Counted from the first letter of the stretch, positions 30,142-58,919 are shown. The stretch: DNA of 64,000 nt from Macrostomum lignano (GCA_002269645.1 NIVC01000730.1:124001-188000), one strand, 5' to 3'. Numbers and translations: made by a program. Notes: a model not told the origin generated them from the letters alone.

Positions 30142-30873
30142 TACATGTTGGTACTGATTGATGCGTTCAGTAAATGGGCTGAAGTTCACGTGACTAAGGG
30201 AACCACTTCATCTGAGACAATCAAGCAACTGCGAAGAACGTTCGCCCAAGAAGGCGTGCCCGTGACTATTGTTTCCGACAATGGACCTCAATTTGTATCG
30301 AAAGAAATGCAAGGTTGGTTCAAAGGAATCAACTGCCGACATGTTCTCACACCACCGTATCATCCAAGGTCAAATGGACTGGCCGAGCGCTTTGTGAGAG
30401 ATTTAAAAAATCACGTCCGAGCCGCTGAAGAAGACGACCTTCAGAGTTGCGTCGACCGGTTTCTGCTTCAATACTGGAACGCGAAACATTCTACGACCGG
30501 AAAATCGCCCTCTGAGCTAATATGAGGTCACCTACTTCGCACCCCTGCATTTTCTCTGGCACGTGAGCCAGTCTGGGTGAAAACCTACAACAACGAGATG
30601 ACAAAGTGGAAGTCTGGCGAAGTGGTGGCAACAGAGGGAAAGGTTGTGGTCGACGTTGAGCTGGAGGACGGAAGGCGTGAACGCTACCATCGTGAACAGA
30701 CAAAGCCAAGGAGTTCCGGTTCCGATGACCTGGTGGAGATGGAGACTGAAGAACATGTGCACACGGATCAAGAGTCTGGTCTTCGGAGAAGTAATCGCCA
30801 TCGGCAAGTACCAAGGCGACTTGAGTACCGCAAGCTTGGTGTACCTACCTAGCTGTTAACTAATGGGAAGGAG
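30142..30873 (+). repeat. Duplicated integrase 3' half, 3' UTR and PPT
   Basis: Nearly identical to ~33862-34593 with only a few substitutions (e.g. HVL versus HFL). Confidence 0.95.
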
Positions 30874-31098
30874 TGTTAGCACTGTGATGAACTTTTATTT
30901 ATTAGAGAATGCACTTTGCTTAGTAGCCGTCAACGGCTGATAATCCTATTGATGTCTATGGACATTTGTACAGTTCAATTCGGTGGCTTAAAGAGTTGCC
31001 AAAATATAATTGAAAAGACCAAGCGTCTGCAGAGTTAAGCTAAAGGCTGAGACTCGATCAATTTTCTTACTCGTCCCAAAAAACGAACACTGGCGACG

Positions 31099-34000
31099 AC
31101 GGCTGGTCTTATTGAGCCTCTGGAGACAGAAGCCCCAGCGGAAATTGAGCGCTGGTTCCAACGCTTCGAAGCAGTTTCCAAGCTGAACAAGTGGGATGAC
31201 ACCGCTCAGAAGTTCGCCCTCATCGCACACCTCGGCAAGAAGGCCTTCGCACTGTTGGCGGACGCGCTATTGCCAGATAAGCCTGACGCCAAGACCTACG
31301 CTGATCTGAAAACTCAGCTGATCAAGGAGACGAAAGCGGCGAAATCCGAGATTGCATACCGGTACGCGTTCCATCACCTCAAGCAGGACGACGGCGAAGA
31401 CGTTTCTGCCTACGCAAGAAGGCTGCGACTGGGTTCGGAGAACTGCGGCTTTTCAACCGCCGAACTGAATGACCGCCTGCGGGACCAATTTATCTTCGGA
31501 TTGTCGAACAAGGAAATCGTCAGAAAGTTGCTCACGGAGAAACTGAAAGATCTGACGTGGGAAAAAGTAACTACGGTGGCCAATGCATGCGAGGCCGTAA
31601 GTCGCGGCGAAAGACAAATCTCAGGAGGCGAAATTCTACATGTCAAGTCAGATCCTCCTTCGACATCGAAAGCCCAGAAGCCAGCGTACCAGAAAAGCGA
31701 CCAGAAGAACGGCCAATTGCGCCAAGTCAAGTGCTTCTGCTGCGGCAAGGAAGGACATACAAAGGACCAGTGCCACCACCGGACTAAGACATGCCTTCAG
31801 TGTGGTAAGGTTGGTCATCTCAAAGCAGTTTGCAGGTGCGGACCGAACAAAGGTGGACAACGGCCTTCAACGAGCAACAAATGGTCACAAGGAGGCGGAC
31901 GGCATCCAAGGAGCAGAGTCAGAGCAATCGACGATGCAGCTGATCAAGTCGGACACATTTTCTCGATGATGACGCCGGAAGATGGTCGTGGAAGCAGAAG
32001 GATAACGCGACATTTAGTAGTCAATGGTACGAAAATCAAGATGCTACTGGACACCGGGTCGTGCTCAACGGTCGTGTCAAGCTCGGTGTTTCAAAGCCTA
32101 CTCGAACCAGCAAATGTAAGGCCCACAAGCAGACGATTCGCTGCGTATCAAGGGTATCCCGTATCAAGGGGAGTAAGTTCCGACCTAACTCTGTTTGTGG
32201 TGGACAACCCAAAAGCCAAATCTATCTATGGCCTAGATTGGATTGCTGCCCTTGAGCCAGACCTCTACACTTTTATTACAAAAAGTACGGTGCCTGAGGA
32301 AGACGGCTCGAATCCTACAACGGCGTGCTCTGTAAAAAGATTTTCTGTATCATTGGCCATTGAGGCGGGAGCAAAGCCCATCTTTTTTAAACCTCGGCAA
32401 ATTCCATACGGGATTCAGGACGATGTCAAGGCCGAGTTGAAGAGAATGGAAGAGGCTGGACAGCTCCAGAAGGTGGAATCCAGCGAGTGGGCTACACCCA
32501 TTGTCTGTGTTCGAAAGCAGTCTGGAAAAGTTCGGATTTGTGGTGACTACAAGGATACCCTCAACCCACTGCTGAAAGACATGGTGTCAACAACGCCCAC
32601 AATTGACGAAGTTCTGTCAAAACTAGGCCGTGCCCGCCGATTCTCTACGTTGGACCTATCAAATGCGTACCTCCAAGTACCGGTGGATGAAGACAGCAGC
32701 GTGATGCTGACGTGGAGCACTCCGTTCGGCTTATACAGGCCCACTGCATTGGCATATGGAGTAAAGCAAGCACCAGCAATTTTTCAGTCATTCATGGACA
32801 GGTTGCTTCTAAACATAGAAGGTGTCATTTCCTACCAAGATGACATTCTTGTGTGGGGTTTCAACCAACAGAGTCATGACAACAGACTTCCAATGTGCTT
32901 TGAATTTTAAAGGAGAGTGGACTGAGCATTAACGAGGAGAAATGCACTTTTAACAAGCCATCTATCATGTTCCTGGGATATGAGATCAGTGAAAATGGCA
33001 TTCGTCCACCACCAAAGAAAGCCAAGGAGATTGCAGGATTAGAAGAGCCAAAGAATCTCAAGCAGCTGCAGTCATTTATCGGGATGGTCGATTTCTACGG
33101 ACGGTGTATCAAGAATCTCGCGAACCTGAAAGAACCTCTAACAAAACTGACCAGGTCAGGAACGAAGTGGGCATGGGGCCCAATCGAGCAGAGAGCCTTT
33201 CAGAGCATCGAGGACGAACTACACAATGCAGTCGCTCTCAAGCGTTGCTGCAGCGAGAGTGCAACGCTGGGCAATCACTTTGATGAGCTACGAATACGCC
33301 ATTGAGTGCAAGAGATCTGCTGAGATTCCCATGGCCGATGCCCTGTCAAGACTGCAGAACAGCACGTCTGAAGGGGAGCAGTTTGACATTAGCTCAGTGC
33401 AGGACTGCCTACTAGATTTTCCAATCAACAAGGAGCGTTTGAGAAGACAATCGAAAGAGGATTCAGAGCTCCGGAAGTTATTCGCTCAAGTCAAGTTTGG
33501 CTGGAATGCAGAAGGACTTCGAGAACTACAACAGTTTAGCCGATTCAGGGACGAGTTAGTCATTGAGAATGGATTGCTGTACAGAGGTATTCGGCTGGTT
33601 GTACCAAAGCAGGAGCGTTCTGCAACTTTGCGATTGCTGCACGAAGGACACATCGGACCAGAAAAGATGAAATCCATAGCTAGACAATGCGTCTGGTGGC
33701 CTGAAGTAGATCGAGACATCGAAAAGTATGCGAAAGGATGTAGTTCGTGCCAGGAAAACAAGGATCATGGGGCCACCCGACAATGGACTTCGTGGCCGGA
33801 TGAGACCGAATGCTGGTCAAGAGTTCACATGGACTACGCAGGGCCTATGAAGGGAGGAAACTACATGTTGGTACTGATTGATGCGTTCAGTAAATGGGCT
33901 GAAGTTCACGTGACTAAGGGAACCACTTCATCTGAGACAATCAAGCAACTGCGAAGAACGTTCGCCCAAGAAGGCGTGCCCGTGACTATTGTTTCCGACA

Positions 34001-34245
34001 ATGGACCTCAATTTGTATCGAAAGAAATGCAAGGTTGGTTCAAAGGAATCAACTGCCGACATTTTCTCACACCACCGTATCATCCAAGGTCAAATGGACT
34101 GGCCGAGCGCTTTGTGAGAGATTTAAAAAATCACGTCCGAGCCGCTGAAGAAGACGACCTTCAGAGTTGCGTCGACCGGTTTCTGCTTCAATACTGGAAC
34201 GCGAAACATTCTACGACCGGAAAATCGCCCTCTGAGCTAATATGA
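31099..34245 (+). pseudogene. Gag-Pol (CCHC zinc knuckles, LLDTGS protease, YQDD RT, RNase H, H2C2/DDE integrase), frameshifted
   Basis: Track ORFs 31255-32910, 32967-33305 and 33226-34245; SDNGPQF and SNGLAER integrase motifs. Confidence 0.93.
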
Positions 34246-35649
34246 GGTCACCTACTTCGCACCCCTGCATTTTCTCTGGCACGTGAGCCAGTCTGGGTGA
34301 AAACCTACAACAACGAGATGACAAAGTGGAAGTCTGGCGAAGTGGTGGCAACAGAGGGAAAGGTTGTGGTCGACGTTGAGCTGGAGGACGGAAGGCGTGA
34401 ACGCTACCATCGTGAACAGACAAAGCCAAGGAGTTCCGGTTCCGATGACCTGGTGGAGATGGAGACTGAATAACATGTGCACACGGATCAAGAGTCTGGT
34501 CTTCGGAGAAGTAATCGCCATCGGCAAGTACCAAGGCGACTTGAGTACCGCAAGCTTGGTGTACCTACCTAGCTGTTAACTAATGGGAAGGAGTGTTAGC
34601 ACTGTGATGAACTTTTATTTATTAGAGAATGCACTTTGCTTAGTAGCCGTCAACGGCTGATAATCCTATTGATGTCTATGGACATTTGTACAGTTCAATT
34701 CGGTGGCTTAAAGAGTTGCCAAAATATAATTGAAAAGACCAAGCGTCTGCAGAGTTAAGCTAAAGGCTGAGACTCGATCAATTTTCTTACTCGTCCCAAA
34801 AAACGAACATGTAGCTTCGGGCCTCGGAACTCAGAAATGAATCACTTAAAGCTCCGGCCTCTCAATCCTGTCAGATGGTCAGCCCCGTGGTAGCAAGATT
34901 GTGGGCGAGCAGCAAGGTCCTACAGTTAAGAGAAGACAGCGAAGAACAAGCAGGGAGAATTTAAAAGGTAGAGATTAGCTAATCCACAGATTAACCAACC
35001 CGCTGCCACCAGTCCGTGCGCCCTGGCTCACCAAACCGGAGCTATCGAAATCGGACTTCCGACTAGAGGGGCACTGCACTTACCTGCCATCTAGTGTCTT
35101 TTAGCTGTCTATTTCGAAGTCATAGCCGAATAGTAGGGACACTGCTGGGACTAAGATCGCATTGGCCATGCAGGGACAGAGAGGACTTTTGCAGGGGGTT
35201 CTTGCGCTGGCGATCCTTTATACACTACTAAATGCACTATTTCATTGCCAAATTCGCAGAAGTACATGTACGCTCGTACAAGTACACGTAACTGCACACT
35301 TTTGGCACTAAATGTGTTAACGCGTCGACAGATAGCGATGATGTAGGTGTATTGCCGCCTTTGGAGATGTTTAGACTAACATTTAACTCGTTTTAGCCGC
35401 TTAGCTGCCTGAGACTGCGCGAAAGCACCAGTCTGGCACTTAGGTTGCATGCTTATCATGATCCCGTACGACATTTTCCGTATCGAGACGTATCGGAGAC
35501 GCCCCCTCAAGGTCCCATTAAAACGTCTCTGGGAACGGTATTTCGATAGTTACGGATTCGTCCCGAAGCGAGAATTTAGGGCCTCCACTGCAGGCCGCAA
35601 AGGAACGTAAAAATACGTGCCCGAGAATCAGCAATTTTGTCGCATTTCC

Positions 35650-37344: not shown

Positions 37345-37975
37345 TACGTCGTCTTATCTTGTCTTGTATAGCCATTCGACCTCCTAGGAGGCATGCCACT
37401 CATTGGCTTTGAGACGGTTCCGCGGTGCAGACTTTCCGGTGTCTTGCCATCTTTTTCTTCGAGATGCTCTTGCTGCAGTCTGGGCAAGTAATCTTCGCTC
37501 TTCTCGGTACGTTGGTTGGTTCAGGCCTGTCCGTCGTGTCGGCGTCTTGGTCCTCTTCTTCTTGTTGGTATCCTGTTTGTAGGTCGTGTACTGCGCACAG
37601 GTGCGTATGTGTCTCGCCATGTTGCTGGTGCTTCTGGGCTGGAGACAGTATGGGCATGTCCCTTTCGGGGCGCCTTTGCAGATCTTGAGGTGGTTCGTCT
37701 CTCTTACTATTTTGTTTAGGATGTCTCCGCATCTTGGGCACTTTTTTCTTCTTGTCTTTGTTCTCGATGCATCCTAATGTTGTGTATCTTTATTCCCGTG
37801 TGAGTCTTGAACTCTCTGTCGCAGATGGTGCAGTATCTGTCCTCTGTTTGCCGTCCTGTTTGGTCCCTTGGCATGAGCGTGTTCTTGTTCAATGCTTTCA
37901 CCTCTTCCCATTTTGTTATGTGCTCCAACCTTGCCTTGACTGCCGTTTTCCAAGATGCTCGTGTTACGGGTGGAG
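37345..37975 (-). mobile_element. 5'-truncated RTE-like non-LTR retrotransposon 3' end with four zinc fingers
   Basis: TRASWKTAVK...WEE (the dR..Wr..v motif), CTICDREFKTHTGIKIH..MH, then CPRC..HLKIC, CPYC..MARHIRTC and CPDC..MARHRKVC across two frameshifts; (CAAGA)n-like tail. Confidence 0.6.
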
Positions 37976-38627
37976 TTTTAATAAGAGTTTCCGGTGGTAG
38001 CTACTAAATTAGCAGCTACTAAAGTCGCAGCAAATGGACGAATGGGGTCAAACGCTGGAGGCAAAAGGTGGTCGCGCTGACCAAGCATTGAACGGAAGAA
38101 ATCATCACGGAAATACATTGACACAAACAAAATTACCAAACAAGGGACGCGCAAGGCTAGAAAAAGGGGCAGGGTGACCAGCGCAGGAACAGGAGAAAAA
38201 GATGAAATATCCCAACAGCTGGGGGCACAGGGTGGACACAATAGGCCAAAAACTAGGGACAGCGGAGAAGGGTCATGGGGTGGTCAAATAGATAAAAATA
38301 AAATTTCAAAAAAAATATTAAGCGTTAATTTAAACAGTCAGTGGCAGCCCGAAACTGCCACATATGCAACAAAATTTCGCATACTTCAAAGGGGGGAACA
38401 AGGAGGGGAACACCAGGTGGAGCACTAGCTGGAAAAAGGGGGCAAAACCCGGGGAAAAACACATTAAAACAAGGGCGGGACCAAGAGAAGGAGCAACAGG
38501 GGGAACAAAGGTGGGAGTAACCAAGGGAATGTTAATAAACATTCAAAGGAGCCGTCGGTGACGTCAATTGTCGCTTCCGGAGGGAGACGTCGCGCTGTCG
38601 CCAACCGCTGCCTGAAGCCCAGTGGTA

Positions 38628-39061
38628 TGAGGTGGGGTGGAGAAGGTTTTTCTTGGAATGGGTTAATTTGAAATTAGTTGATGACACCAGTGAGGTGGGG
38701 CGGATTCCACGTTTCAATTGCCGCCGGCGTTGTGTCCGCACGAATAAAGCCGGAAAAACCGCGCAGACAGATCTCAACGAATTTCTTCTCCTTTTACTCC
38801 GACAGCCGGGTTCTCAAGTCCGGGGGGGAGGGTAGTCGTAATCGTAGCGGAGCGGTCGTAGAGCGGCACGGTCGTTCAGATGATAAATCACTGGAGGTTC
38901 TGACTCCGTAAATTAAGGCGTCGATGTGTTGAACTTGTTGAACTTGTTACTTTCAGTAGGGTAGTTGCTGCCACCACCGTAATTCTCGTATTACGGAACG
39001 TTGATGGTCTCAGAGCTTTCTTTGAGTTGAGACTTCGGTTATTTTACGCCCCACGGGCAAA
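38628..39061. ncRNA. Conserved structured ~430-bp unit, copy 1
   Basis: TGAGGTGGGG...TTATTTTACGCCCCACGGGCAAA; conserved hairpins with variable loops across three copies. Confidence 0.5.
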
Positions 39062-39698
39062 TGATTCAAGATAGGCTATGGCTTATGTCAACGGAATAAT
39101 TATTAAATGATTAAGTTTGTCGGTTATTTATTTATTGAATCAGGTTTTACTGGCTCGCGCGGATGGTTAATAGGTTGAAACTAATTACTACAGACGATAG
39201 ATATCGCGGGCGCCGGTGCGTTAATGAAACTTAAAATAAAAGAAAGCTGATACGCTAAACTTAACTCGGAAACAAATGACAAGAAGAACAAACGGTAACA
39301 AAACAAAACTAAAGGAAAGAAAGGACAGAAAAAGGGGAAATGAAGAAACGAAAAACTGAGCAATGAGTATTTATAATAGAAACGTATATTACATCCAAAG
39401 CATGGGGGCTAAGTTGGCCAACGTGGGGGCCATGCAATGGCTAGTGAACCAAAAATAACTGAAAAAACACATAAAATGATTAAATTCCACGGGTGATATT
39501 GCGTTTAGCCAGAAAATGGGGAGCTAAAAATCAGACAGTGGTCCCGACTTGGGACCAGCGGAGGGAGGTGAGGTCATAGTATACCATGGTTGGCCGCACG
39601 GGTTGGCATTCACGAAAAAATATTAGCACGCATTTAAATGTTAGGAAATAATTATTTAAAAAAAAATTAATGTCTGCGGCAACACTACTGCCACAATG

Positions 39699-41641
39699 CA
39701 GGGATTCCCAGAGCGATATTCAAGATCGATATTTAGAAATAACAAAAATCTCTGCTTTTAAAACACTAAACGCCATGATTTTTTACAGAAGAAACATCAC
39801 CCACGAGATAAACCGACTTAAAAAAAATTACAGCTACAGATTGAAATGATTTTTTACAATTTGCCAAAAACTGGTGCTTCCCTATCTCCACAGTGTAATA
39901 AATTGATATTCGATTTCGAGTACTTCTGCTTGCTCTCTGTCGCTGAAAATTGACATACAGGACTTCACCCAGACACTAATCGATTATCATAACTCAAACT
40001 GAACTCAAAGTTTCATGCTCGAGAACTATTCGAGAAAAACTGATGTTCCTATCTCCACAGTGTATTAGATTGATATTCGATTTCGAGTACTTCTGCTTGC
40101 TCTCGTCGCTGAAAATTGGCATGCAGGACTTCACCCAGACACTAATTGATTATCATAACTCAAACTGAACTCAATTGCTTCATGCTCGGGAACTATTCGA
40201 GAAAAAAACTGATGTTCCTTTTTCTACAGTAAAGTGTAACATTTTATATTGAGTTAAAAGTTTTTTTGCACTGAATAAATTATAATTTAGGTGAAACTCA
40301 ATTAGCTCTTTAGTATTACTCATTTAATTAAATATTAATTTAATCATTAGATTAAAAAAGCGAACGGAACACTCGCCGATTGTTAAAAAAAAGTTTAAAA
40401 GGCATGTTACAGCATAGCACGCGCATTTTCATCTAGCAAAAATGAAGCAAAACAAGCAGTTTTTGTTCCTTTCTGCTGTTAAATGCATTCTATGGGTCAC
40501 ATTATTGTAGACCAAATGTATTTGTCTCAAGAATTGCTGTCTTCATAATTTTATCCTGGTTGTCGAAGTAAGACATCATCCGAAAGGAATGTCTTGCTGT
40601 CTAGTAAGAGTACGAAGAAATTGACTACTCATTGCATGACAGTAGACCGGCCGATATACTAAAACTTTAATAAAAGCTAAAACTTTCTGCAAAAATTCTC
40701 ATGTATCGTTACATGCTTCTCTATAGACCAAAAATAAGACATACATCTACTTCTGAAGAGTCAGGGTCGAAAAAATAAAAAACTTGGCCTTCTAAACTTT
40801 TTGCACAAATTTGGAGTGGTGCGTCCTTATAGTCTAGCAGTCCTTGAATAGCGTACGCGTCATGCATATTTAATGCTGCACAAAGTTAAGCCTTTAAATT
40901 GTATGCTAATCGATCAGTTGAGTAAATTGGTGCAGTTCGAGCAGCAGAAGTTTGCCTTTTCTTGCGTTGTCGATGCACAGATGCAGTGGATCCAGTCTAG
41001 ACATGATGAGCACTCGATCTACCAGTAGTGCATGCACAAGAATTAAAATTTAAAGTAAAGTGTACGTGCGTATGCATGGATATTCAGCACAGAGGCTGCA
41101 TCAGGTCTTTATATACCTACAAGAATTTTACAACTCACCCAATAAATTGTTGCTGCACCGTCTGCTTTTGCGGCTCTTCTGCTTGACAAATGGCACAAAA
41201 ACCTTGGTTGCTATCGACGGCGTTTTTGCTAGCTGATTACTCGAACAACGAAATCGAATATAGCTACATCTACATGTAATACTGTGGAGATAGGAACATC
41301 AGTTTTTCTTGAATAGTTCTCGAGCATGAAGCTTTAAGTTCAGTTTGAGTTATGATAATCGATTAGTGTCTGGGTGAAGTCCTGTATGTCAATTTTCAGC
41401 GACAGAGAGCAAGCAGAAGTACTCGAAATCGAATATCAATTTATTACACTGTGGAGATAGGGAAGCACCAGTTTTTGGCAAATTGTAAAAAATCATTTCA
41501 ATCTGTAGCCGTAATTTTTTTAAGTCGGTTTATTTCGTGGGTGATGTTTCTTCTGTAAAAAATCATGGCGTTTAGTGCTTTAAAAGCAGAGATTTTTGTT
41601 ATTTCCAAATATCGACCTGAATATCGCTCGGGGAATCCCTG
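39699..41641. mobile_element. Non-autonomous long-TIR element (MITE/foldback-like)
   Basis: ~360-bp inverted repeats starting CAGGGATTCCC and ending GGGAATCCCTG; 2-bp TSD TG; ~165-bp tandem subrepeats in the left arm; no ORF. Confidence 0.9.
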
Positions 41642-42072
41642 TGAGGTGGGGGCGGAGAAAGTTTCTTGGAATGGGTTTATTTGAAAATTAGTTACTGACA
41701 CCAGTGAGGTGGGGCGGATTCCACGTTTGAATTGCCGCCGGCGTTGAGTTCGCACTAATGGTTCCGGAAAATCGCGCAGAAGAATCACAACGAATTACTT
41801 TCTCCTGTTTTACTCCGACAGCCGGGTCCTCAAGTTCCGGGGGGAGGGTAGTTGCAATCGTAGCGGAGCGGTCGTATAGCGGCGCGGTCGTTCAATTGAT
41901 AAACACCGGAGATTCTGACACCGTAATCTACGAGCTAATGCGTTGGCTTGTCGAGCTTGCTACTTCAAGTAGGGTAGTTGCTGCCACCACCGTAATATAC
42001 GTATTACGGAATCTATGGTCTCAGAGCTTTCTTTAAGATGAGACTTTGGTTATTTTACGCCCCACGGGCAAA
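41642..42072. ncRNA. Conserved structured ~430-bp unit, copy 2
   Basis: Homologous to 38628-39061. Confidence 0.5.
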
Positions 42073-42677
42073 ATACTCAAAATAGACTACAGGCTTCTTA
42101 TTAGTAATGAAAGTATTATCGCTTAATATTAATTATTATTATTAATATTATTATTAACTGACTTTTAAAATAATATTTAGCAGGCAGGTACTAATTATTA
42201 TGGTGCGATCGAAATGATTTGACGAGCAGAGCCGGAGTAAGGTAGATGAAGAAACTAAAAACGTAAAACGTAACAAAAACGCAAGAATAAAAAGAGAGTG
42301 AGTGCGAGAGAGAGAGGGCGAGAGTGAATTAGCAGCGCTTGAAACATGCAAGATAAATAGTTAGTATAAATTCCAACTACAGGGGCGAAACTTGGACGGG
42401 TAGCTGGGCAGCTGGTTGGGCAAAGGAGTGGGCACAAGGTTGAGCGAAGGCAGTTTTACGCAGAAATTAAAAGAAAAGAAAATAACAAACAAGAGTGGGG
42501 AAACATGGATTCATAGGTGGGACAAATTGGAGGAACAAAAATTGGGAAAAAGGAAAACATACGGGAAAGTGACTAAATAAACAACTATTGGAAAACAATA
42601 CGCAAAAATTTCCGGGAGTTGGGGCACGTAATTAAATTCATAGAAACTTAGTAAATTGAACGCAAAAATTATTAAAG

Positions 42678-43095
42678 TGAGGTGGGGGTGGAGAAAGTTT
42701 TCTTGGAAATTGGTTGGTTTTTGAAAATTTTCTGACACCAGTGAGGTGGGGCGGATTCCACGTTTGAATTGCCGCCGGCGTTGAGTTCGCACGAATAAAC
42801 CGGAAAAATCGCGCAGACGAATCACAACGTAATCTTTCTCCTTTTACTCCGACTGCCGGGTTCTCAAGTCCGGGGGGAGGGTAGTCGAAATCGTAGCAGA
42901 GCGGTCGTTAGCGGCGCGGTCGTTCAAAGCGATGAAACACCAGGGATTCTGTCTCCGTAAATTAATGCGACGATTTGCTGAGCCTGTTACTCTCAGTAGG
43001 GTAGTTGCTGCCACCACCGTAATTTACGGCGGACGATAAGTCTCAGAGCTTCCTTTGAGATGAGAACTTTGGTTATTTTACGCCCCTCGGGCAAA
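42678..43095. ncRNA. Conserved structured ~420-bp unit, copy 3
   Basis: Homologous to 38628-39061. Confidence 0.5.
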
Positions 43096-43653
43096 TGACT
43101 CACGAAATGCTATGGCTTTAGTTTAATGAGTAAATAATAATGGTTAAAGTTTATTACATTGGCTTATTTTGAGCAGGCTGGATATTAAAAAAAATATTAC
43201 TACGACGCTACGCGGATGTGACGCGGGCCGAGGTCGAAATAAAAGTTTCAACTGGGCTTAAACGATAAACACGAAAGTAAGAAAAGAAAAGCAGAGAAAC
43301 GGGAATGAAGACAGTCATGTAATCATCGCGTTTAAATAGAGGAGAATTAACGGTCACGCAGCGGGGATAGAGGCTGGACATGCACATGGGAGAGAAAATC
43401 ACGAAAAAGGGCATAATGCGGGGCGGCATAAACACATAAGAAAAAACTAAAATTTACTGTACACATCCAGCTTCGTGTAATCAAAACACGTTGCGGGTAC
43501 AAACAGAATCCAGCATCGGGAGTGATGTCACTCCAAAAATGGGAGAAAACGCGACAATTCACCAGCCACATGCAAAATTAAAAAAATGACAAATACAAGT
43601 TTTATCGCATCTTACGTGGCAACCCGCCTGCCACATGCGCAGGGCGGCCGGCA

Positions 43654-44286
43654 TCACTGGCGAAAATTAGCAGCACCCGCTGCCGATGTACGTCCTCGGC
43701 CGCCGCGGCCGTTTGGGCGAGGGTCTCTCGGCTGGTCTTCGGTTGGGACTTGCTGGGTCGGTCGGGGTGGCGCGTTGACCGGCGCCGAGTTGACGGCTGG
43801 GGGCCATCCTTGGATTTTAACGCGACCGTCGATAATGCGGAGCCGCTCCAGGTACTTCTCGACGGCCGCGTCCCAGAAGGCTTTCAGACGCTCGTCCCAG
43901 CCGGCCTCCAGATGTCCGGCTTCGAAGTAGGCAAGCGCAAGGAAAAGCGCTAGAGCCGGTCGGGGCTGGACTTTCTGCCGAAGGTGTTCTTCGGCTCGGC
44001 CTAACTGCTCGTCCAGCAGATCGCGAGTTGAGGCCGGAGGCATTATGCCGCAAAGTTGCCGCCACGGGGCGTCGATCTGTACACGGCCTTTCTCGACGGC
44101 CTGCGCAAATGCCTTGAATAGCGCCTGTCTGAGGCGGATGCGCGCCGGGGCTGCACCGGTCGCAGCGGCATTGATGACCCGGAGGGTCGTGGCGTCTTCC
44201 TGGCTGAGCCATGGCGCCCGGCGCAGTGAGGCCTCAAGTTCGGGCGCGCGAAGAGCTTGGTCGCTGGCTGACTCTTGGTTTGCCAT
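43654..44286 (-). CDS. Orphan ~210-aa protein with a Pro/Arg/Gly-rich (RGGRGR) tail
   Basis: Uninterrupted GC-rich ORF starting MANQESAS; predicted helical core; no recognised family. Confidence 0.6.
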   Translation of the reverse strand: MANQESASDQALRAPELEASLRRAPWLSQEDATTLRVINAAATGAAPARIRLRQALFKAFAQAVEKGRVQIDAPWRQLCGIMPPASTRDLLDEQLGRAEEHLRQKVQPRPALALFLALAYFEAGHLEAGWDERLKAFWDAAVEKYLERLRIIDGRVKIQGWPPAVNSAPVNAPPRPTQQVPTEDQPRDPRPNGRGGRGRTSAAGAANFRQ

Positions 44287-44599
44287 AGTAGGATGATTTC
44301 CGCAGAAGAAAATCACAAACGGAGCAAAATAAATGAATGGAGCAGCAAAGGAAGCAAAAAAATACAAAGGGGTTAATTACAGCGGGGCGATGAGGGATGA
44401 TGCGCAGTCGAAAATAATAGCCGAAGGAAATAGATAGCACGGAGGCAAAGTTAAACAGTTTGAGAAATTTTGGACCAGAGATAAATCGCGGCCTTAAATA
44501 CGACAGAAACCTCCAGTCGCTGAAAAAGGTTTCCAACCACGGGGAACGACCACCACCCCGCTTGCACTCTATGGCGGGCACACACGGAGGTGGGGTGGG

Positions 44600-47200
44600 T
44601 GACAAAAAGTAGAGTCATAAAACGGATAGTTAACCGCGGCTGGTTCGACTTCGCTTTCGTCACTCGACTCGTAGGGCAGCATTGGCCGCTCTGTCTGGCG
44701 CGGAGGCTCCTGCGGTCGATCTGCCATCACTTGCGGCACCTTGATGACGTTATTGCGGTGTACGAGCATATCAGCAGGGCGTCCACGTCGGGCTGTTGCA
44801 GGCTGGATCCAGTAGGCTACTTCGCCGACCTTTCTGTTGACTTTTTACATACTCTTGTACGGTCGGTGAAACTTCGGCAGCTCGCCCAACTCAAAATGCG
44901 GCGAGAATCCCGTCGTACGGTTGACAGCTGATCGCAGGGCTGTCAAAGCGGCTGGCAGCATCTTGTCCCACTGTTGATGATCTTCGAGGAGACAAGTGAG
45001 CACCTTCTTGATGTTTTTGTTGCACGACTCAGCTTGACCGTTGGCCCAGGGCGAGTATGGCGGCGTCGTTGTCTACCGGATGCCATAGACTTCGCAGAAA
45101 TGTCGAAACTCATGCCCAGTGAACTGCTTGCCTTGGTCTGAATGGATCCACGCGGGGATTCCGGTGATCGGGAAGACTTGTTCCTGCAGCAGAGTTTTAA
45201 TTGTCTTGGCGCGCTGATTTTTCATGGCGAAGGCGAATGGGTACTTCGACGTAGTATCGACGTAGGTTAGGATTTACTTATTGCCTCGGTCTGTCGGGTC
45301 TCCAGTGGGGCCCATGATGTCGATTGCGCATCGCCCATAGATTTCGCAAACCGGGAACGACTGTACATGCGCCGGAACTCGTCGCCGTCCTTTGCTCTGA
45401 GTGCAGGTCTGGCAGAAAGCGACGTAGTCGGACACGGCCTTGGCCAGGGCCGGTCGCCAGAACCTCTCGCGTACCTTTGCGATGGTGAGATCTCGGCCCA
45501 TGAGTCCGCAGTAGGGCGAACCATGCAGGTCGGCGAACACCGTGGCGTCGAGACTCTTCGGCAGGACGATCCTCGCTTTATCCTCTTCGCCAACATCGTC
45601 GAGATGGATGACTAATAGTCCGTCGTCTCGGACTTCCAATTGCTCATAGAATGCTAGGAGATTTCGCTCATCTCTTGTTAGATTTAAACGCTGATTTAGC
45701 GGCGGCTTCGGTTGTCGACTTTCAATTAAGTTGATCATCATCGCGATGGCGGAGTCAGCACGCTGATGAGTCTGGAGCTCCCACGAGTGACTGGTTTTGG
45801 GATGTGATCGGTTAGATTCAATGCTTGGCGTCGGTTAGTCGAATTAGTCGGCGCGGCTTCGGCTGTGGCGGCATGGTTCGGGGTCTGGAGCTCCCTCCGC
45901 ACGGTCGCTACTCTGACCGATTGCCGGGTCGTTGAAAAATTTAAAGGCCGCTCCTTGTCAGCAGATAAGGGTGAGCAGCAGATAAGGGTGAGTCAGCAGA
46001 ACTGTCGGCGTCGAGGCTGAATCTCACTTTCTTGAACACAGGACGGTGAGCGGATTGGCAGCGGTCGTCGCTGGCTGCGCTGTGGTCGCTGTCCTCGTCG
46101 CTTTCAGCTAGTAGACGGCGGCTCCTTGACGGGCAACATGTCGTGCTGCTAACGTGCTGGTGGGCGACTTCTGAGAGTCTCGAAAACGGCTGGTTGATGG
46201 CCTCGGCTTCGTCGCCGGCGAGTGCAGCGCTGTCAGCGGCTTGCTGTCGGCTGCCGATGTTGCTGGCGGAGTAGCCTCGCCGTTGGACTCATTCGGCTTC
46301 GTCGACGGTTCCCGTCGATTCCGACGGTTCGGTTGCTTCCTGCTCGGTGGAGGGCTAGGGTGGCTGCTGTCGGGGACCTTCGGCGCCGCTGCGCCAGTTT
46401 GCGCGGCTGGCTGCTTACTTTGGTCCTCGTCTGCTGCCTCACGCTGAGCCTCCTCCATGCATTCGGCGTCGTCCTCGGGCCGTCTCGAAAGACCGTCGGC
46501 GTTCTGATGCTGACTTGATTTACGATGCTGGATCTCGAACTCGAATTCTCTGAGGCGCTGTAGCCATCGTCCGAAGATTCCTTCTTGCTGAGTTCTTAAG
46601 ATCCAGGTTAATGCGGCATGGTCAGTTCGGCAGATGAACTTTTTTGCCAGCAGGTAGAATCGGAAGTGTCGCATCCCGTCTACAACTGCCAAGAGTTCTT
46701 GCTTTGTAATTGGATACCAAGCTTCGGCCGGTTTGAGTCTCCGGGAGAAATAGCCAATTGGTCGCTCAACTCCGTCAGCTTGGCGTTGGCTCAGGCAGGC
46801 TCCGATTCTGGTCGCAGAAGCATCCGTGTCCAGGATAAAGATAACATTAGGATCCTCGCTGAACTGCGGATACGCGAGCACAGATGTCGAAGTCAAGGCT
46901 GCTTTGAGCTGGTCGAACGCGTCTTGCTGGGCTTTTCCCCATAGACAATTGAAATTTCGGATCTTCTTCTCCTTGATCAGATCGTGGAGCGGAGCAGCAA
47001 GTTCTGCATAGCCAGGTACGAATTTTGAATGATAAGCGCACGTGCAGACAAAACTTTTAAGTTGTCGCGCTGTTCTTGGTCTTGGCCAGGTCTGAATAGC
47101 CTCGATCTTCGCCGGATCAGTTTTGATTCCATCTTTTGTTACAACATGGCCCAGGTAGTTTAAGCTTGCCCGAAATAGATCCCGGTGTAAAATTCGCTGT
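44600..47200 (-). mobile_element. Gypsy pol fragment (RT end, RNase H, integrase), 5'-truncated and disrupted
   Basis: YLGHVV, LDTDAS, TDHAAL, HxxxxxH...CxxC, IHSDQG..F and NGQAE motifs; internal stops; no LTR found. Confidence 0.9.
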
Positions 47201-47323
47201 CGAATCGACCAGAGAATCGACCAAAAATTCTGGATCGAATAGACCAAGAAATGGCACTCAGAAATTTTCTTAATTCGACGATCGAATATTCTGTCTAATT
47301 TCTACCAGTAAATTTTATTCACC

Positions 47324-50300
47324 TGTTGTGTTCTAATTAACACAGATAGTTTCTTTGATTGAAGCTTTCTCGGCGAGACACAAATCTCGCTCACAATATA
47401 TTTATAGAGGTGAAACTCCTACTTGCACGTTGCATTGCCAAATCGATACGCAATCACCTACACATTCTAGTCTGAGTACAGTATACGCCCACGCATTCAA
47501 TAAGGTCAATAGTTAATTGTCAGTGGTCAGTTCATTGTGCAAGCATTGTCAATCACAACATTCTCCCCCCCCCTTCCGGAAGAGGATAACGCTCCGGTTG
47601 CCGTCGAGCTCGAGTTGACCTTCGAAGTTCAGGTGGAGGTGGCGGCTCCCCCGTCCGTGGGGGCGGAGCCGGCGGCAGCGGCAAATCGAACAAGTCGTCC
47701 TCTTGGTCGGCCGCGCCGTTGTCAGCCGGTGGGCTGTTGCACTTAACCAGCCGACTCGCTTGCCACTTTGTACCGTCGGACAGCACGAAGGTGTTGAGCC
47801 CTGCTCGGGAGGCGATCTTTAGCGGTTCCTTCAGTCGGGTCGCCAGCTTGTGCGCTCGGTGCGGCGTCTGTCGCCAGACCCAGTCTCCGGCCTGGAATGC
47901 TGAGTCTCGAGCTCGCCTTCGCTTGTTGGTGTAGTCGGCATTCTTGGCTTGCCTCTGTGCGATGCTGTCTCGCAGGTCGCTGTCGTCCCGCTGTTGCACT
48001 GGAGTTGGCCTGAGCAGCTGCAGTCCGGACCGCAGCTTGCGCCCGATCATCAGCTCGGCTGGAGTCAGCCCGGTGAGAGCGTGCTGGCTGGTCCTGTAGG
48101 TCTTGAGCACCAGGTCGATGGCGTCCTCGAACTTCGCTCCCGCCCTCAGGTTCGCTGCCAGGCCCTCCTTCAGACTTCGGTTGAATCGCTCGACTCCGCC
48201 GTTGCCTTGCGGGTAGTACCGGCTCACTCGGCTGTGCTTGATGCCCTCGGCTCGCAGGAACTCTTCGAACTCGTCGCTGACGAACTGGGGTCCGTTGTCG
48301 CTGATCAGCATCTTCAGAACTCCCCACCGGCCGAATAGCTTCCGAAGCGTCTTGATGATGTTCGCAGAGGTGACGGTTTCCATGGCTGCAATCTCCGGCC
48401 ACTTGCTGTACAGGTCGTGGATCACCAGTAGGAACCGCTGGTGTCGAGGAGCCGCGGCGACGTCGCCAAAGATATCGATCTCGACCTTGTCCCACGGTCC
48501 ATCTGGCCACTCGATTGGTGTCACGATCGTCTGTTGAGGCTTGCCGGACTTCTCCGCCAGAGTGCAGGCCGTGCAGTTCTTGACGTAGTCCTCAACCTGC
48601 CGGTCAATTCCAAGAAACCAGACCATGTCGCGGCACCGCTGCTTTGACCGAACGACGCCCGGATGCCCTTCGTGGGCCTCCTCGATGACTTGAAGTCGCA
48701 GGCTCGTCGGGATGATCGCGCGTTCACCACGGCCGAGGCACTGACCGTTGTTCCAGCAGAACAGCTCGTCCCGGACGTTGAAGTACGGCTTCAGAGAGCT
48801 GTCCACATTCGTCGGCCAGCCGCCCGAGATGTACTGCCAAACCGCCTGCAGCACTTCGTCCTCCTTGGTCGCCGTTGCCAGTGCGTCTGCCGTCAGCGTT
48901 GTCTTCGAGTCGACGACTGCGTAGACGTAGCCCTCCTCGTCGGTCTCCTCGGATGGATCGCGCTCCGTCGTGGCCCATCTGGACAGCATGTCCGCGCACT
49001 TGTCAGCGCCAGGGATGTGCTCAAACCGGACGTCGTAGCCGCGAAGTCTCTCGACCCATCGATGAATGCGAAGAGGCCTGTGCCCCATGCTTTTCGAGTC
49101 GAGCAGAGTTTTCAGGGCCTTGTGGTCGGTGCGCAGCGTTCTCGTCTGTCGTATAGATAGTAGTGCCAGCGTTCGATGCTCCATACACAGGCCAGGGCTT
49201 CTCGCTCTCCGGCTGAGTATCGCTTTTCCGCTGGGCTGAGTGCTCTCGTTGCGAACGCGATTGGCACCTCTTTTCCGTTTTGTACTTGGCTGAGCACTGC
49301 CCCCAGTCCGTCTAGACTTGCATCGCAGGTGACGTACGTCTCAGCATGGCAGTCAAAATGAGCTAACACTGGGCTGCTGGTTACGGCTGACTTGAGTGTA
49401 CGGAAGGCTGTACGTTCTCGCTCACCCCAGTGCCAGTCCGCGTCCTTTTTGAGCAGTTGTCTCAGAGGCTCGGCAATTGCTGAGTAATAAGGTATGAACT
49501 TGTGCAAAAAGTTCACTGCCCCGAGAAACGATTGAATTTGCGCGACTGTTGATGCCTCAGGAATTCTTAGAATTGCGTCGACGTTGGACTTGGTCGGTTT
49601 GAGGCCGTCTGCAGAGATGACCAATCCGAAGAAATCCACGCTCGCCTGCCGGAATTTGCACTTCTCTCGATTGAATGTGAAGCCTTCGCGATGAATCCGC
49701 CCTAGGACTTCTCGGAGGTTCTTGTCGTGCTCAGTCTCGTCCTTGCCGTGCACCAGGATGTCGTCCACGATGTTAATGGCGCCAGGAGCTCCTCGAAGCA
49801 CCGTCTGCAGGGCTCTCTGGAAGGCAGCTCCGGAGCTGGATAGCCCGAATGGCACCACGGTGAACTGATACAGGCCGGCATCGGTGATGAAGCACGTCAG
49901 TCCTCGAGAGTCTGGATGCAGCGGAATCTGCTGGTAGCCTTGACGCAGGTCCAGCTTGCTGAAGCACTTCGAGCCGTTGATGCTGGCCGATAGGTCCTCG
50001 ATTGACGGTACCGGATAGCGGTCCGCGATCACCGCCTTGTTGACCTGCCGCAGATCCACGCAGAGACGAACCTTGTTGGACTCCTTCTTGCGCGTCACGT
50101 CAACGTTGCTAACCCACTCGGACGCGTCGACCCTCTCAATGATGCCCTGTTGCTCCATCCGGCTGATCTCTGACGTCACTTCGTCCTTCAGGCCGATCGG
50201 CAGCTTCCGCATTGGCTGAGACACTGGCTTGACCGAGGCGTCGATCTTTGTCCGGTGAATGAAACTCTTGGACCGGCCCAGACCGTCGAAGATTCCGGGG

Positions 50301-51196
50301 AAGTCGCGCTTGATCGTAGTCTCGCTGATGCTCATCACTCTGTTGTCACCTTGGAAGATTTTGAATCCGAGGGCCTGAAACAGGTCGCGGCCCAGGATGT
50401 TCGCTCCTTTGTCGGCGACGTAGAATGTGGCTTCTGTCCTGATGCCGTTGAACGTCACAGGAAGCTCGACCTTGCCGATGGTCTTGATCGCAGATCCGCC
50501 GTATGCCTCCAGTTTTGTGCTCGTCGGAAGCAGCGGGTGCCTAGCGAAGGACTTCTTGAACGTCTCCATGTTGAGCAACGAAACGGCAGCACCGCAGTCG
50601 ATTTGCAGTCGAATCAGCTTTCCGTCCAGACGGCATTCGCAGAATAAGCTGTCTGTGCTCTTGTTGTTCACGGCCAGGACCGTCAGGCTGGACTCTGCAG
50701 GCTCTTTGGTGTCGATCGCAAAGACCGCTTTCATGCGGCACATTCTCGCGAAATGGTTCGTCTTGCCGCATCGTCTGCATTTCTGGCCCATCGCCTTGCA
50801 TTCGCCCTTGTGTCCGTGGTTGCCTCCGCATCGAGTGCACTTTAGACCTGCTGCTGCGGTCTTCTCATGGCGAGCAGCTGGCTTCGGCTTCTTGCTCAGA
50901 GCCTTCACGTGGAGCTCTGGGCCGCTGACCTGCTTGGCATCTCTGATGGCTGCTTCGATTCGCTCAGCCTTCTTGATGGCGTCATGTAGCGTCAGATCGT
51001 CCTCCTCCATCAGGAGTCTTTCCCTAATGCGAGGTACGCAGGTTTTCTCCACAAGTTGGTCTCGAATCATTTCGTCGTGAAAGGTGCCAAAGTTGCAGTT
51101 TGTTGCCAGTTCTCTCAGGGCCATCACGTAGTCTCCGATGCTCTCGCCGTCGTGCTGGGGTCGCTGCCGAAAGGCGAAGCGCTCTGCTATGACGCT
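47324..51196 (-). mobile_element. Gypsy LTR retrotransposon, 5'-truncated in gag, single 3' LTR
   Basis: LTR 47324-47560 (TGTTGTG...CACAACA), adjacent PPT GGGGGGGGAGAA on the minus strand; TCACC flanks both junctions (47319-47323 and 51197-51201). Confidence 0.92.
47553..51190 (-). pseudogene. Gag-Pol (CCHC, IDCGA protease, IVDD RT, RNase H, integrase), frameshifted
   Basis: Track ORFs 49112-51127 and 47553-49184; SDNGPQF and GNGGVER motifs. Confidence 0.93.
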
Positions 51197-55565: not shown

Positions 55566-55800
55566 TGGAGAAGCAGACGCCGGAACTTGACTCGCATTGG
55601 TTGTCAAGATACATGGCACTAATTCAAAAAAGATAAAAAAACTTTTTTTTGGCTTTATTGCGTGAGAACTGAATGCATTGACCTTGCCAGGGCGCTAAAA
55701 TGGGCGCCCAAAGGCTGAAATTGGCGCCGGTACATTAAACTTTGCGCCCAGAAGTAGCAAGCTGATATATGCTGTCACTTCTACGCCCGTTGGCACATTC

Positions 55801-57377: not shown

Positions 57378-57666
57378 TTAAGGCATGGCTTCGGGGATCA
57401 GCGCAGATTTATATCTATTTGGCACTATAAAAATCAAAAGTGTCTTTTTTGGACTTGCTATTGTTGATTGTTTTGTTATTGATTATTTTTCAATAAGGTA
57501 TACTCCATCTAGATCACTATTTGCTGAGAGTTCAGGATCTACTAAATATCTTTACTCAGCAACATTGAAAAGTCACCACTCTATGCGCCAGTGAGTAATA
57601 TCTCTTGGACTATTTTAAAAATATAGATAAAAGATATGATATAAACTAATCGGGGTAGCTTTAATC

Positions 57667-57868: not shown

Positions 57869-58919
57869 CTTTAATCCGTTCAACCCTCGCACACCGCTCC
57901 CCCACTTCATTCCTCAACTCAAGTCTGCCGCGTGGCGTAGCTGAGTTGCGTCACTCGCAAAGATTCAGAAACTTTACCTGCACTTTCAAAAGTGACGACC
58001 ACAGACTTCTGTGATGGCGACTTTTCGATGTTGCTGAGTGTATACGAAGTTACTACCTTGTTATTATAATTGAGTTATGATTTACTTTTACTACTTAATT
58101 GTGTAATGCCTTTGTCTTAATCTTTTACTCACTTGATGCACTGTTGCACTGTTAGTGTTGCCACACAGAATCGCCCATATCGCTTTTATCGCTTTTTATC
58201 ACCTTCCTCCAGGTCATTCAGTCATGCTACTCTCGTCCTACCCCCCTCTCTGTATCTCTACCTATTGTCCTATCTCGCGATCCTCTCCTTTACAGTACAT
58301 CACTCTTCTGATATTTCATCACCCTAACCTACAGGAGTAGGGGGGGGGGAGATGTGGCGCATGAGGGCGGGAATCAGAGTTTTCGCAGACGGAAATCTTC
58401 ATTATGAAGTTTATTAAGCCTTTGAATAGGCTTTTACCCCCCCCCCCCCAACTAAAACCGCACCTGCGTATAATCCCACAAGGTGTAGTATATTTAAACA
58501 CGCCGGAAGGAGCCAAACGAGACAAAGTCAGTTGCGAAAAGCAGGCAGCGGCCGAGAAAGCGGATCCCAGTGGATCAAGCGAGGCATTTATTCATTAGTT
58601 TAAACGAGTTAATATTTATTGGTTCGTAAAAAGGAAATAAAAAAATTGAGAAATGGCGGCGGAGCCAAGCCGGGCCGGGTGCAGAGGCTTTAAGCTGGCC
58701 GGCGCGGCCAACACCCCCACACCTCAACCCCCCGCCAAAGTACAGCGATATGTACAGCGGCACCCTCCGGCGCGTCTAACACCCCTTACTCAGAGAGTAA
58801 CGATTGCATTAAACACGCCGGAAGGAGCCAAACGAGACAAAGTCAGTTGCGAAAAGCAGGCAGCGGCCGAGAAAGCGGATCCCAACCCCAATGATGGGGA
58901 AGGGAAGGAGTAAAAGCGG

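Follow-up and report, generated by a model that had tools for sequence, protein, structure and literature searches.

The locus studied here, part of a 64-kb stretch of Macrostomum lignano DNA (the window), raises the question of why three neighbouring units of about 1 kb should share a strongly conserved core while the spacers between the cores have diverged beyond recognition. The earlier note on this DNA proposed selection on a folded RNA or single-stranded DNA, for example in an ncRNA array or retrozyme, and stated that no feature class in the window explained the pattern. Our analysis points elsewhere: on balance, the array is probably a same-orientation cluster of a dispersed, mobile-type repeat of ~1 kb, here termed Y, whose copies are most likely the LTRs (solo or 3') of Gypsy elements, and interspersed-repeat and LTR biology accounts for most of what is seen. 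This removes a false lead, in which a conserved core, diverged spacers and palindromes together resembled a structured-RNA gene array; the array behaves like an interspersed repeat in which the core is a cis-acting module.

The three direct cores of ~440-470 bp described previously are real (38628-39100, 41642-42080 and 42678-43100), and, once an insertion at 39699-41641 is taken out, their starts lie ~1070 and ~1036 bp apart and the units measure 1071 and 1036 bp. All units lie head-to-tail in one orientation. While the three units stand, the extent first given for the array was too small, as a further fragment, Y0, ends at 38362 and a segment resembling a unit start lies at 44585-44625. The components of the array are as follows.

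38030 to 38362, plus strand: Y0, the 3' fragment of a further unit, read from the sequence; left limit approximate.
38363 to 38627, plus strand: purine-rich linker of 264 bp between Y0 and Y1.
38628 to 39695, plus strand: Y1, a complete unit, with its core at 38628-~39095 and an AT-rich and purine-rich variable part.
39699 to 41641, no strand assigned: foldback-type insertion of 1943 bp with inverted and tandem repeats, ends read directly.
41642 to 42677, plus strand: Y2, with its core at 41642-~42080 and a variable part that includes an (ATT)n-like run.
42678 to 43635, plus strand: Y3, a complete unit, with its core at 42678-~43100 followed by the variable part.

A complete copy of Y begins sharply with TGAGGTGGGG and continues with a ~440-bp part common to all subfamilies, then an AT-rich stretch and a purine-rich one of low complexity in which microsatellites tend to expand, before finishing with a terminal hairpin, GTGGCA-N7-TGCCAC, and a single A. 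The hairpin reads GCGGCA-ACACTAC-TGCCAC in Y1 (39677-39694) and GTGGCA-ACCCGCC-TGCCAC in Y3 (43617-43634), each time followed by A. Y0 has the same terminal architecture as these two units, its purine-rich stretch leading into an A-run and the hairpin GTGGCAG-CCCGAAA-CTGCCAC (38341-38361) plus A, and nhmmer detected no similarity between Y0 and the other spacers. An A-run is found 20-40 nt 5' of the terminal hairpin in Y0, Y1, Y3 and the solitary copy at locus L001 described below. Y2 adjoins Y3 directly; ~50 nt at its 3' end, the terminal hairpin among them, are missing. With the insertion removed, the junction of Y1 and Y2 consists of the Y1 end CCACA, 1-3 nt, and the Y2 start TGAGG; direct abutment of this kind is unusual for LTRs.

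The insertion that parts Y1 from Y2 had been labelled a MITE, a name that does not suit it. At 1943 bp it is longer than a MITE (< ~800 bp), and it has no clear target-site duplication, its 8-bp flanks being unlike (CCACAATG versus TGAGGTGG) with at most a 2-bp TG repeat. Its ends, CAGGGATTCCC...GGGAATCCCTG, belong to terminal inverted repeats of ~360 bp, inside which a 167-bp sequence is repeated in tandem, and it is because of this combination of length and tandem-repeat-containing inverted repeats that we class the element as foldback-like.

The contrast between alignable cores and highly diverged spacers was borne out. Pairwise identity among the cores of Y1, Y2 and Y3 is 83-84.5% (E-values 1e-119 to 1e-135), whereas neither blastn nor nhmmer --max picks up any similarity among their ~600-bp spacers, and the edge from core to spacer is abrupt, with identity dropping from 80-86% to about 50% and then to 35-45%. 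The spacers have a common architecture and yield weak collinear alignment scores (z up to 7.8), and tandem expansions occur in the variable part, namely (GGAGCAGTTGAA)5 in the L001 copy and the (ATT)n-like run in Y2. Within the core lie invariant blocks of 28-34 nt, a GC-box-like GAGGTGGGGCGG present twice per core, conserved T4/A5 runs on both strands, and GTGAGGTGGGGYGGA, of 12-15 nt, which also occurs twice and is the sole internal direct repeat of a unit. The opening motif GAGGTGGGGYGG has five occurrences in the window against 0.00 expected, and its reported recurrence at 44587, adjoining the point where a Gypsy integrase frame ends, was confirmed. A protein-coding core was rejected, given many 1-nt indels between copies and stops in every frame. 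The six-frame translation of the core consensus found no match in the protein collection, and two invariant core 24-29-mers were absent, by exact scans, from viral, metagenome and prokaryote genome contigs.

Y has discrete ends, is dispersed to other contigs and falls into subfamilies. Further copies were found in M. lignano loci L001-L004 (~83 kb), which were reached through homologues of ORF237, a reading frame beside the array; all come from GCA_002269645.1, and only about five independent copies of Y were available in all. The core profile matches L001 at 12769-13207, the homeologous loci L002 and L004, and L003. The solitary L001 copy measures 986 bp, reads TGAGG...GCCTGCCACA, ends in the hairpin GTGGCA-N7-TGCCAC and has CTTG on both flanks; its ends are those of Y1 and Y3. 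The CTTG/CTTG pair surrounds the solitary copy in L001, L002 and L004, representing one independent insertion, and by our own estimate its chance probability is ~0.03 when boundary slack is allowed for at this one independent locus. No flanking duplication was found around Y1, Y3 or the whole array. Compared over its full length with the L001 copy, Y3 is 87.5% identical in the core and 80.4% in the spacer, and it matches a solitary unit in the M. lignano contig NIVC01000292.1 at 79.6% over 1026 aligned bases. Y3 thus resembles a copy from a different contig more closely than it does its array neighbours Y1 and Y2, and the array units are subfamily members of a dispersed, mobile-type repeat, with no sign of concerted evolution. 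Core identity goes down to about 67% in the L003 copy. Y is probably an unannotated repeat family with defined ends, of use in masking and annotating Macrostomum genomes.

The class to which Y belongs is suggested by its neighbourhood, where three features lie on the opposite strand.

43654 to 44289, minus strand: ORF237, encoding an orphan Macrostomum protein (211 aa counted from the ATG) with homologues in M. lignano.
44290 to 44625, minus strand: conserved region upstream of ORF237, matched by nhmmer to L001, L002, L004 and L003 (E about 1e-5).
44569 to 47247, minus strand: degenerate Gypsy (Ty3/mdg4) RNase H-integrase fragment B, with Pfam RT_RNaseH and Integrase_H2C2 matches.

Read along the minus strand, the window presents the integrase fragment, ORF237 and Y3, and L003 has the same order and orientation. 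Fragment B, which lies upstream of ORF237 in the same orientation and has stops in its frame-0 translation, is 75-81% identical at the nucleotide level to L003 5176-6509. Y follows the last ORF behind the Gypsy integrase fragment at a distance of about 11-18 nt: in the window ORF237 and Y3 converge, with 18 nt between the stop codon of the former and the end of the latter, and in L003 the distance is about 11 nt. Within the conserved upstream region, GGAGGTGGGGTGGG (44585-44598) resembles the first ~15-45 nt of a Y unit, and 44551-44608 matches L003 at 79% (blastn). Remnants of the same integrase are also present upstream of the ORF237 homologue in L001, where no Y stands behind the ORF and the Y copy lies 2 kb off in the opposite relative orientation, which weighs against an LTR. 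Translated, the Gypsy segments of the window share 81-97% identity with the M. lignano protein P0057, and an exact look-up of one window Gypsy ORF returned no record. Ty3/mdg4 (Gypsy) LTR elements are plentiful in M. lignano, with 1928 copies in 409 families (PMC12801592).

The likeliest identity for Y is an LTR from a Ty3/mdg4 (Gypsy) lineage, oriented along the minus strand of the window, the strand of the pol fragment and ORF237. TG...CA termini (TGAGG...CCACA) delimit Y1, Y3 and the copies in L001 and L004, with an imperfect terminal inversion (TGAGG versus TGTGG, 4/5 positions), and in both the window and L003 Y lies directly downstream of a Gypsy coding region in the same orientation. 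Its length of ~1 kb is likewise shared with Gypsy solo or 3' LTRs, and the 4-bp flanking repeat of the solitary copy may be a target-site duplication of the kind that flanks solo LTRs. Among the alternatives offered by the earlier note were cis-elements in an extended 3' region of a retrotransposon; the discrete, dispersed ~1-kb unit with fixed ends, behind a Gypsy ORF at two loci, fits this proposal or that of a non-coding mobile element. In minus-strand order, Y would comprise TG, a hypervariable U3-like part, an AT-rich, TATA-like segment, a conserved, promoter-proximal R/U5-like part and CA; we infer both this assignment and the LTR identity of Y, and Gypsy LTRs likewise have a fast-evolving 5' (U3-like) and a conserved 3' (R/U5-like) portion. 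The core would then be kept by cis signals for the transcription, reverse transcription and integration of the element, with no host need for a folded RNA, while the variable part would be subfamily-specific and subject to quick turnover.

Y differs from Gypsy LTRs in several respects. Neither the 64-kb window nor the ~83 kb of M. lignano loci contained two Y copies enclosing an internal region, an absence that is weak evidence in so small a sample. On the Gypsy/ORF237 strand, the sequence before Y is GC-rich (GCCGGCCGCCCTGCGCA directly preceding TGTGG) and contains no polypurine tract, behind none of the Y copies is there a convincing primer-binding site, and the neighbouring Gypsy element A has no LTR partners in the window. 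Moreover, ordinary LTR biology does not predict three to four copies of different subfamilies lying end to end. If Y is an LTR, such an arrangement may have arisen when elements inserted repeatedly into or beside one another and then underwent LTR-LTR recombination, or by the targeting of resident copies, and it would be of interest to transposon biology if it proved general. The plant Ogre/Tat LTR retrotransposons, studied by Macas and colleagues, reportedly have hypervariable or tandem-repeat-bearing 3' regions, and Y resembles these in consisting of non-coding repeats downstream of pol with quick turnover and tandem expansions; Y differs in that it is also found solitary with fixed ends and in that its adjoining units are not closest relatives.

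A non-autonomous element of another class, which would form head-to-tail clusters by inserting at the ends of resident copies, is a possible explanation that we nevertheless consider rather unlikely, and this judgement covers jointly a LINE-dependent retroposon with the 3' stem-loop as its reverse transcriptase recognition site, a Helitron/Helentron-like rolling-circle element and an element moved by a tyrosine recombinase. Such an origin would suit the sharp 5' end, the conserved 5' block, the microsatellite-bearing variable middle and the hairpin at the very 3' end, together with the A-run before this hairpin in four copies, the seeming 5' truncation of Y0 and 3' truncation of Y2, and the presence of different subfamily members end to end in one orientation. 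The TG...CA ends and the possible 4-bp target duplication suit an LTR better. The ends of Y are TGAGG/CCACA and not the TC...CTRR of Helitrons, its flanks do not correspond to insertion between A and T, and only the 3' hairpin fits. DINE-1/HINE Helentrons and Helitron arrays have a conserved 5' block, a microsatellite middle, a 3' stem-loop and a head-to-tail tendency, all of which are shared by Y. In contrast to them, Y has its hairpin at the very terminus rather than ~10 nt from the end, shows a possible 4-bp target duplication, and lacks subterminal inverted repeats, TC/CTRR ends and insertion sites of the T-T or A-T type. A SINE is opposed by the lack of a tRNA (ARAGORN), 5S or 7SL head (Rfam) and by the T4/A5 runs of the core, at which RNA polymerase III would terminate on both strands, and a retroposon by the extreme end of Y, which carries neither a poly(A) nor a simple-repeat tail. 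A TRIM was also considered and rejected, with no terminal direct repeats of ~100-250 bp, no primer-binding site and no polypurine tract.

Little probability attaches to a more particular proposal, that Y is an undescribed non-autonomous element integrating precisely at the ends of resident copies by way of its terminal hairpin, perhaps with ORF237 as a partner and by a mechanism that could be of the single-strand/HUH type or the tyrosine-recombinase type. Targeting of ends would account for the head-to-tail order of different subfamily members.

An ancient tandem triplication of a 1-kb segment in place is also very doubtful as the origin of the array; on that view the spacers would be saturated, and the core would have been kept by core-limited gene conversion or by host selection, for example on a long non-coding RNA, a promoter/enhancer module or a platform for protein binding. 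The regular spacing and single orientation of the units would agree with such a history, as would the shared architecture and collinear scores of the spacers, the invariant core blocks and the doubled GC-box-like motif. Over its full length, however, Y3 has its closest relative, a solitary copy, on another contig, so the units did not simply diverge in place. Furthermore, since the spacers of Y3 and the L001 copy are still 80% identical where the cores differ by 12.5%, neutral decay by itself would be expected to leave the Y1-Y3 spacers alignable. The homeologous copies in L001, L002 and L004, which differ by 3-6 substitutions in the core and 2-4 in the spacer, give no signal of host-level constraint specific to the core, and Y is not an outlier relative to its flanks. 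The drift of the L003 core also speaks against the triplication.

Finally, it is extremely unlikely that the core gives rise to a structured RNA, or to a mobile RNA that cleaves itself (retrozyme-like, circular RNA). Short palindromes with differing loops are present in most copies (TTACT-N3-AGTAG, CCGTAAT-N6-ATTACGG, GTCTCA...TGAGAC and GCCC-N3-GGGC), and from these the core had been called hairpin-rich, with the persistence of stems beside varying loops read as evidence for selection. Local inverted repeats with a minimum stem of 5 bp are, however, no more frequent than in dinucleotide shuffles (P = 0.57, 0.24, 0.76), and across six copies the four named stems are either invariant or broken where they change (1 compensatory cell, ~9 unpaired cells). 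The covariation score of these stems was equalled in 309 of 500 shuffles, the RNAalifold covariation term was +0.7, and minimum-free-energy z-scores of -0.8 to +1.3 in every copy and on both strands indicate no excess stability. Rfam contained no matching family at the gathering threshold and gave only three weak, unrelated matches at E up to 10, the CUGANGA hammerhead box is absent from every unit, and the units contain no hammerhead or other self-cleaving ribozyme motif by which a retrozyme would be recognized. The Rfam and covariation comparisons suggested alongside the folded-RNA proposal thus returned neither a family nor covariation, the latter with power limited by six copies; a lack of covariation and a core belonging to an ordinary LTR or SINE, named in advance as the outcome that would speak against that proposal, are largely what emerged. 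Retrozymes, Sm-alpha-type hammerhead repeats and TRIMs are, like Y, non-coding, repeated, non-autonomous and retroelement-associated, and Y differs from retrozymes and Sm-alpha-type repeats in having neither a ribozyme motif nor evidence of structure.

The protein encoded beside the array merits separate mention. A word-indexed protein search with ORF237 gave no match, and an exhaustive representative search found the homologues P0107 (47% identity) and P0108 (51%), which are the annotated M. lignano proteins BOX15_Mlig017912 and Mlig013834. ORF237 has no match in Pfam, PDB or BFVD, and a PDB-sequence profile search was also empty; its AlphaFold2 model has a pLDDT of 66.5 and no fold match in PDB or BFVD with E < 0.6. 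The family, which always lies downstream of the remnants of one Gypsy lineage, may represent an accessory retrotransposon gene; the tail of ORF237 is RG-rich, and the protein could be Gag-like. ORF237 accompanies Y in two loci, and together with BOX15_Mlig017912 and Mlig013834 it forms an orphan family whose members are annotated as transcribed genes.

The three-copy array described in the earlier note is a real observation. A core of ~440-470 bp occurs in the window as three direct copies (38628-39100, 41642-42080 and 42678-43100) with pairwise identities of 83-84.5% (blastn, E 1e-119 to 1e-135), and once the element at 39699-41641 is removed the unit lengths are 1071 and 1036 bp, in agreement with that note. 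The ~600-bp spacers are A/G-rich on the plus strand, and no mutual similarity among those of units 1-3 (Y1, Y2 and Y3) was detected by blastn (word size 7) or nhmmer --max. In a three-way alignment, identity falls abruptly at the core-to-spacer edge from 80-86% to ~50% and further on to 35-45%. In global alignment the spacers score above shuffles (z up to 7.8), and they have a common layout: an AT-rich segment gives way to a short GC island, which is succeeded by a purine-rich tract and then by an A-run with a hairpin after it.

Dispersed copies were found on the GCA_002269645.1 contigs of P0107 and P0108, annotated M. lignano proteins (BOX15_Mlig017912 and Mlig013834), which yielded four loci (L001-L004), all four containing the core. 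In L001 and its homeologues L002 and L004, the repeat is solitary, 986-997 bp long, starts with TGAGGTGGGGGTGGAG, ends with ...CGTGGCAACCCGCCTGCCACA, and has CTTG on either side. The L001 copy aligns with Y3 over its full length (79.6% identity across 1026 aligned bases; core 87.5%, spacer 80.4%). Given this solitary full-length copy and the same ends in units 1 and 3, the repeating entity is a discrete ~1-kb element, here called Y. Y2 is without its last ~50 nt and directly adjoins Y3, and the Y1/Y2 junction reads CCACA, then 1-3 nt, then TGAGG. Tandem expansions occur in the variable part of Y2, as an (ATT)n-like run, and of the L001 copy, as (GGAGCAGTTGAA)5.

Features of the array, its neighbors and the ORF237 family (window coordinates unless a locus is named)
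Ends at 38362: Y0, a further 3' fragment of Y with the same terminal hairpin
39677-39695: terminal hairpin + A of Y1, same unit end as the L001 copy
39699-41641: foldback-type element, 1943 bp (1.94 kb), separating core copies 1 and 2
43617-43635: terminal hairpin + A of Y3, same unit end as the L001 copy
43654-44289, minus strand: ORF237
47247 down to ~44600, minus strand: degenerate Gypsy RNase H-integrase fragment 'B'
L001 10001-10702; L003 10001-10876; L004 10001-10717: ORF237 family members

The element separating core copies 1 and 2, previously labeled a MITE, is better described as foldback-like because its terminal inverted repeats (~360 bp, 96-98% identity) contain 167-bp tandem repeats (2.2 copies in the left arm). 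Its ends, CAGGGATTCCC...GGGAATCCCTG, look like those of Ac/hAT elements, and no clear 8-bp target duplication was found around it.

The nearer kin of Y3 is a copy on another contig rather than its array neighbors, and the array shows no concerted evolution. Neutral decay of spacers after a local triplication is excluded: the Y1-Y3 cores are ~16% diverged yet their spacers lack any similarity, and since the L001 and Y3 spacers remain 80% identical at 12.5% core divergence, plain neutral decay cannot explain those of Y1, Y2 and Y3. The three units belong to different subfamilies with a common core module.

A protein-coding core was ruled out by many 1-nt indels between copies and stops in all frames; a six-frame protein search with the core gave no match, nor did DNA scans of viral, metagenome and prokaryote collections. 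The proposal that the core is under selection as a folded RNA was examined through Rfam, hammerhead, folding stability, hairpin count and covariation, all with negative outcomes. Rfam gave no match at the gathering threshold across the entire window and only three weak, unrelated matches in 37900-44700 with E relaxed to 10, and the CUGANGA hammerhead box is absent from every unit. Against dinucleotide shuffles, minimum-free-energy z-scores were +1.10 and +0.58 for core 1, and in the remaining copies they lay between -0.8 and +1.3 on both strands; local inverted repeats showed no excess over shuffles (P = 0.57, 0.24 and 0.76), and RNAalifold on three copies returned a covariation term of +0.7. 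On a six-copy alignment, which includes one copy only ~67% identical, the four hairpins named in the earlier note are 92% paired because their nearly invariant stems hardly vary; we counted 1 compensatory cell against ~9 broken cells, and the covariation score was matched in 309 of 500 shuffles. The core also carries conserved T4 and A5 runs, at which RNA polymerase III would terminate whichever strand is transcribed. Nothing in these tests points to selection on a fold, within a statistical power limited by copy number.

Among homeologous Y copies, the core has diverged no less than the spacer (3 vs 2 and 6 vs 4 substitutions), and the divergence of Y is no outlier relative to its flanks; therefore, no host-level constraint on the core is seen. 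Across positions 6000-14800 of L001, L002 and L004, these three homeologous or allelic copies show mosaic divergence (0-22 substitutions per 500 bp), and which pair is closest shifts along the locus; the pattern is suggestive of gene conversion, or of redundancy in the assembly, in the hidden-polyploid genome.

The more exciting reading of the array is unsupported, and Y is very likely a transposable-element-type repeat rather than an array of RNA genes. Probably, Y represents an LTR-like family of Macrostomum repeats that has escaped annotation and is clustered here in a transposable-element-rich region. Ty3/mdg4 families are abundant in M. lignano (PMC12801592). LTR-like traits of Y include its ~1-kb length, its TG...CA ends with imperfect terminal inversion, the 4-bp flanking repeat on the single solitary insertion (one locus), and its location at two loci behind the final ORF of a Gypsy-type element, precisely where a 3' LTR would lie. 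On the strand of the Gypsy-type ORFs, the 5' part of Y evolves fast and its 3' part is conserved, in line with the U3 and the R/U5, respectively, of an LTR. Several observations speak against an LTR: no LTR pair of Y copies was found, nor a polypurine tract before Y or a primer-binding site after it; the 4-bp flanking repeat comes from one locus; and the direct abutment of Y1 with Y2 and of Y2 with Y3 is not predicted by ordinary LTR biology. The specific assignment as an LTR is a tentative one, falling somewhat short of probable. A serious rival is a non-LTR retroposon, or an element of rolling-circle type, that has a terminal hairpin and targets its insertion to ends. Y fails those Helitron, HINE and SINE hallmarks that were tested. 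The one remaining oddity is the end-to-end arrangement of members of different subfamilies.

ORF237, the ORF adjoining Y3, has no Pfam domain, and neither PDB nor BFVD yielded a structural relative; the protein is predicted to be helical, and its C-terminal tail is RG-rich (pLDDT 66.5). Two relatives emerged from an exhaustive search, P0107 (47% identity) and P0108 (51%), and ORF237 belongs to a Macrostomum-restricted orphan protein family (BOX15_Mlig017912g1/g3/g4 and Mlig013834g1; ~45-51% identical to the window protein). In every case its gene is located downstream of what remains of a single Gypsy integrase lineage, and this constant position makes it a candidate accessory or Gag-like gene of a retrotransposon. 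The Gypsy pol adjoining the array has one close match, M. lignano protein P0057, with segments 81-97% identical to the window. On the minus strand, the window order is fragment 'B', a conserved ~330-nt region, ORF237, 18 nt, and the reversed Y3, Y2, Y1 and Y0 fragment. The ~330-nt region contains CCCACCCCACCTCC, the opposite-strand form of the motif that the earlier note had placed at ~44587 as a recurrence of the core's opening; this motif is real and conserved but is part of the ORF237 module. Conservation of the sequence upstream of ORF237 extends to all loci (E ~1e-5), and the distal 15-45 nt of this upstream region are similar to the beginning of Y.

L003 preserves the order and orientation of the window, interrupted by later insertions (integrase 75-81% nucleotide identity, motif 79%, ORF 51% amino-acid identity). 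Its Y begins ~11 nt past the ORF stop codon, with a core that shares ~67% identity with those of the window and is divided by a 3-kb insertion. This insertion (11876-14953) is flanked by a ~15-bp duplication (CTGCCTG..TGAGTTCG) and holds a ~1-kb GA-rich minisatellite found also upstream of the L001 ORF237 homologue (9031-9438). In L001, remnants of the same integrase lie upstream of that homologue, and Y is 2 kb from it in the opposite relative orientation. A ~120-bp inverted repeat in L001 (12136-12248 and 19388-19509; 82% identity) is tRNA-like in sequence and probably represents a tRNA-derived SINE.

Elsewhere in the window, downstream of a nearly intact Gypsy gag-pol, 'A' (47553-51127, minus strand, and 47250-47560), come a textbook polypurine tract, GGAAGGGGGGGGGAGAA, and the beginning of an LTR, TGTTGTGATTG..., which has a TATAAATA box; this LTR is truncated after ~300 bp by fragment 'B', and a matching 5' LTR is absent from the window. 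Directly adjoining Y0, short minus-strand ORFs at 37400-37930 with C2H2/C2HC zinc-finger motifs (CTICDREFKTHTGIKIHNIRMH and CPDCSKSISKKKMARHRKVC) have no relatives in the window or the loci and may be a remnant of another retroelement. Short-period tandem arrays occupy 1-1700, 16498-17352, 52861-53328 and 55699-57400; the window's arrays include a ~23-bp satellite at its start, 57-bp and 39-bp arrays within long minus-strand ORFs, and a complex array with a 20-bp base unit. A second Gypsy (30040-34704, plus strand) contains 300-bp segments 100% identical and 3720 bp apart (30142-30441 and 33862-34161) and a 113-bp segment present three times, which could reflect recent internal duplication or assembly redundancy. 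At 58729-62460, 84-bp direct repeats (99% identical, 3648 bp apart) enclose minus-strand ORFs with a SAP domain and reverse transcriptase, and this unit resembles a retroelement that is either tandemly arranged or bounded by terminal repeats.
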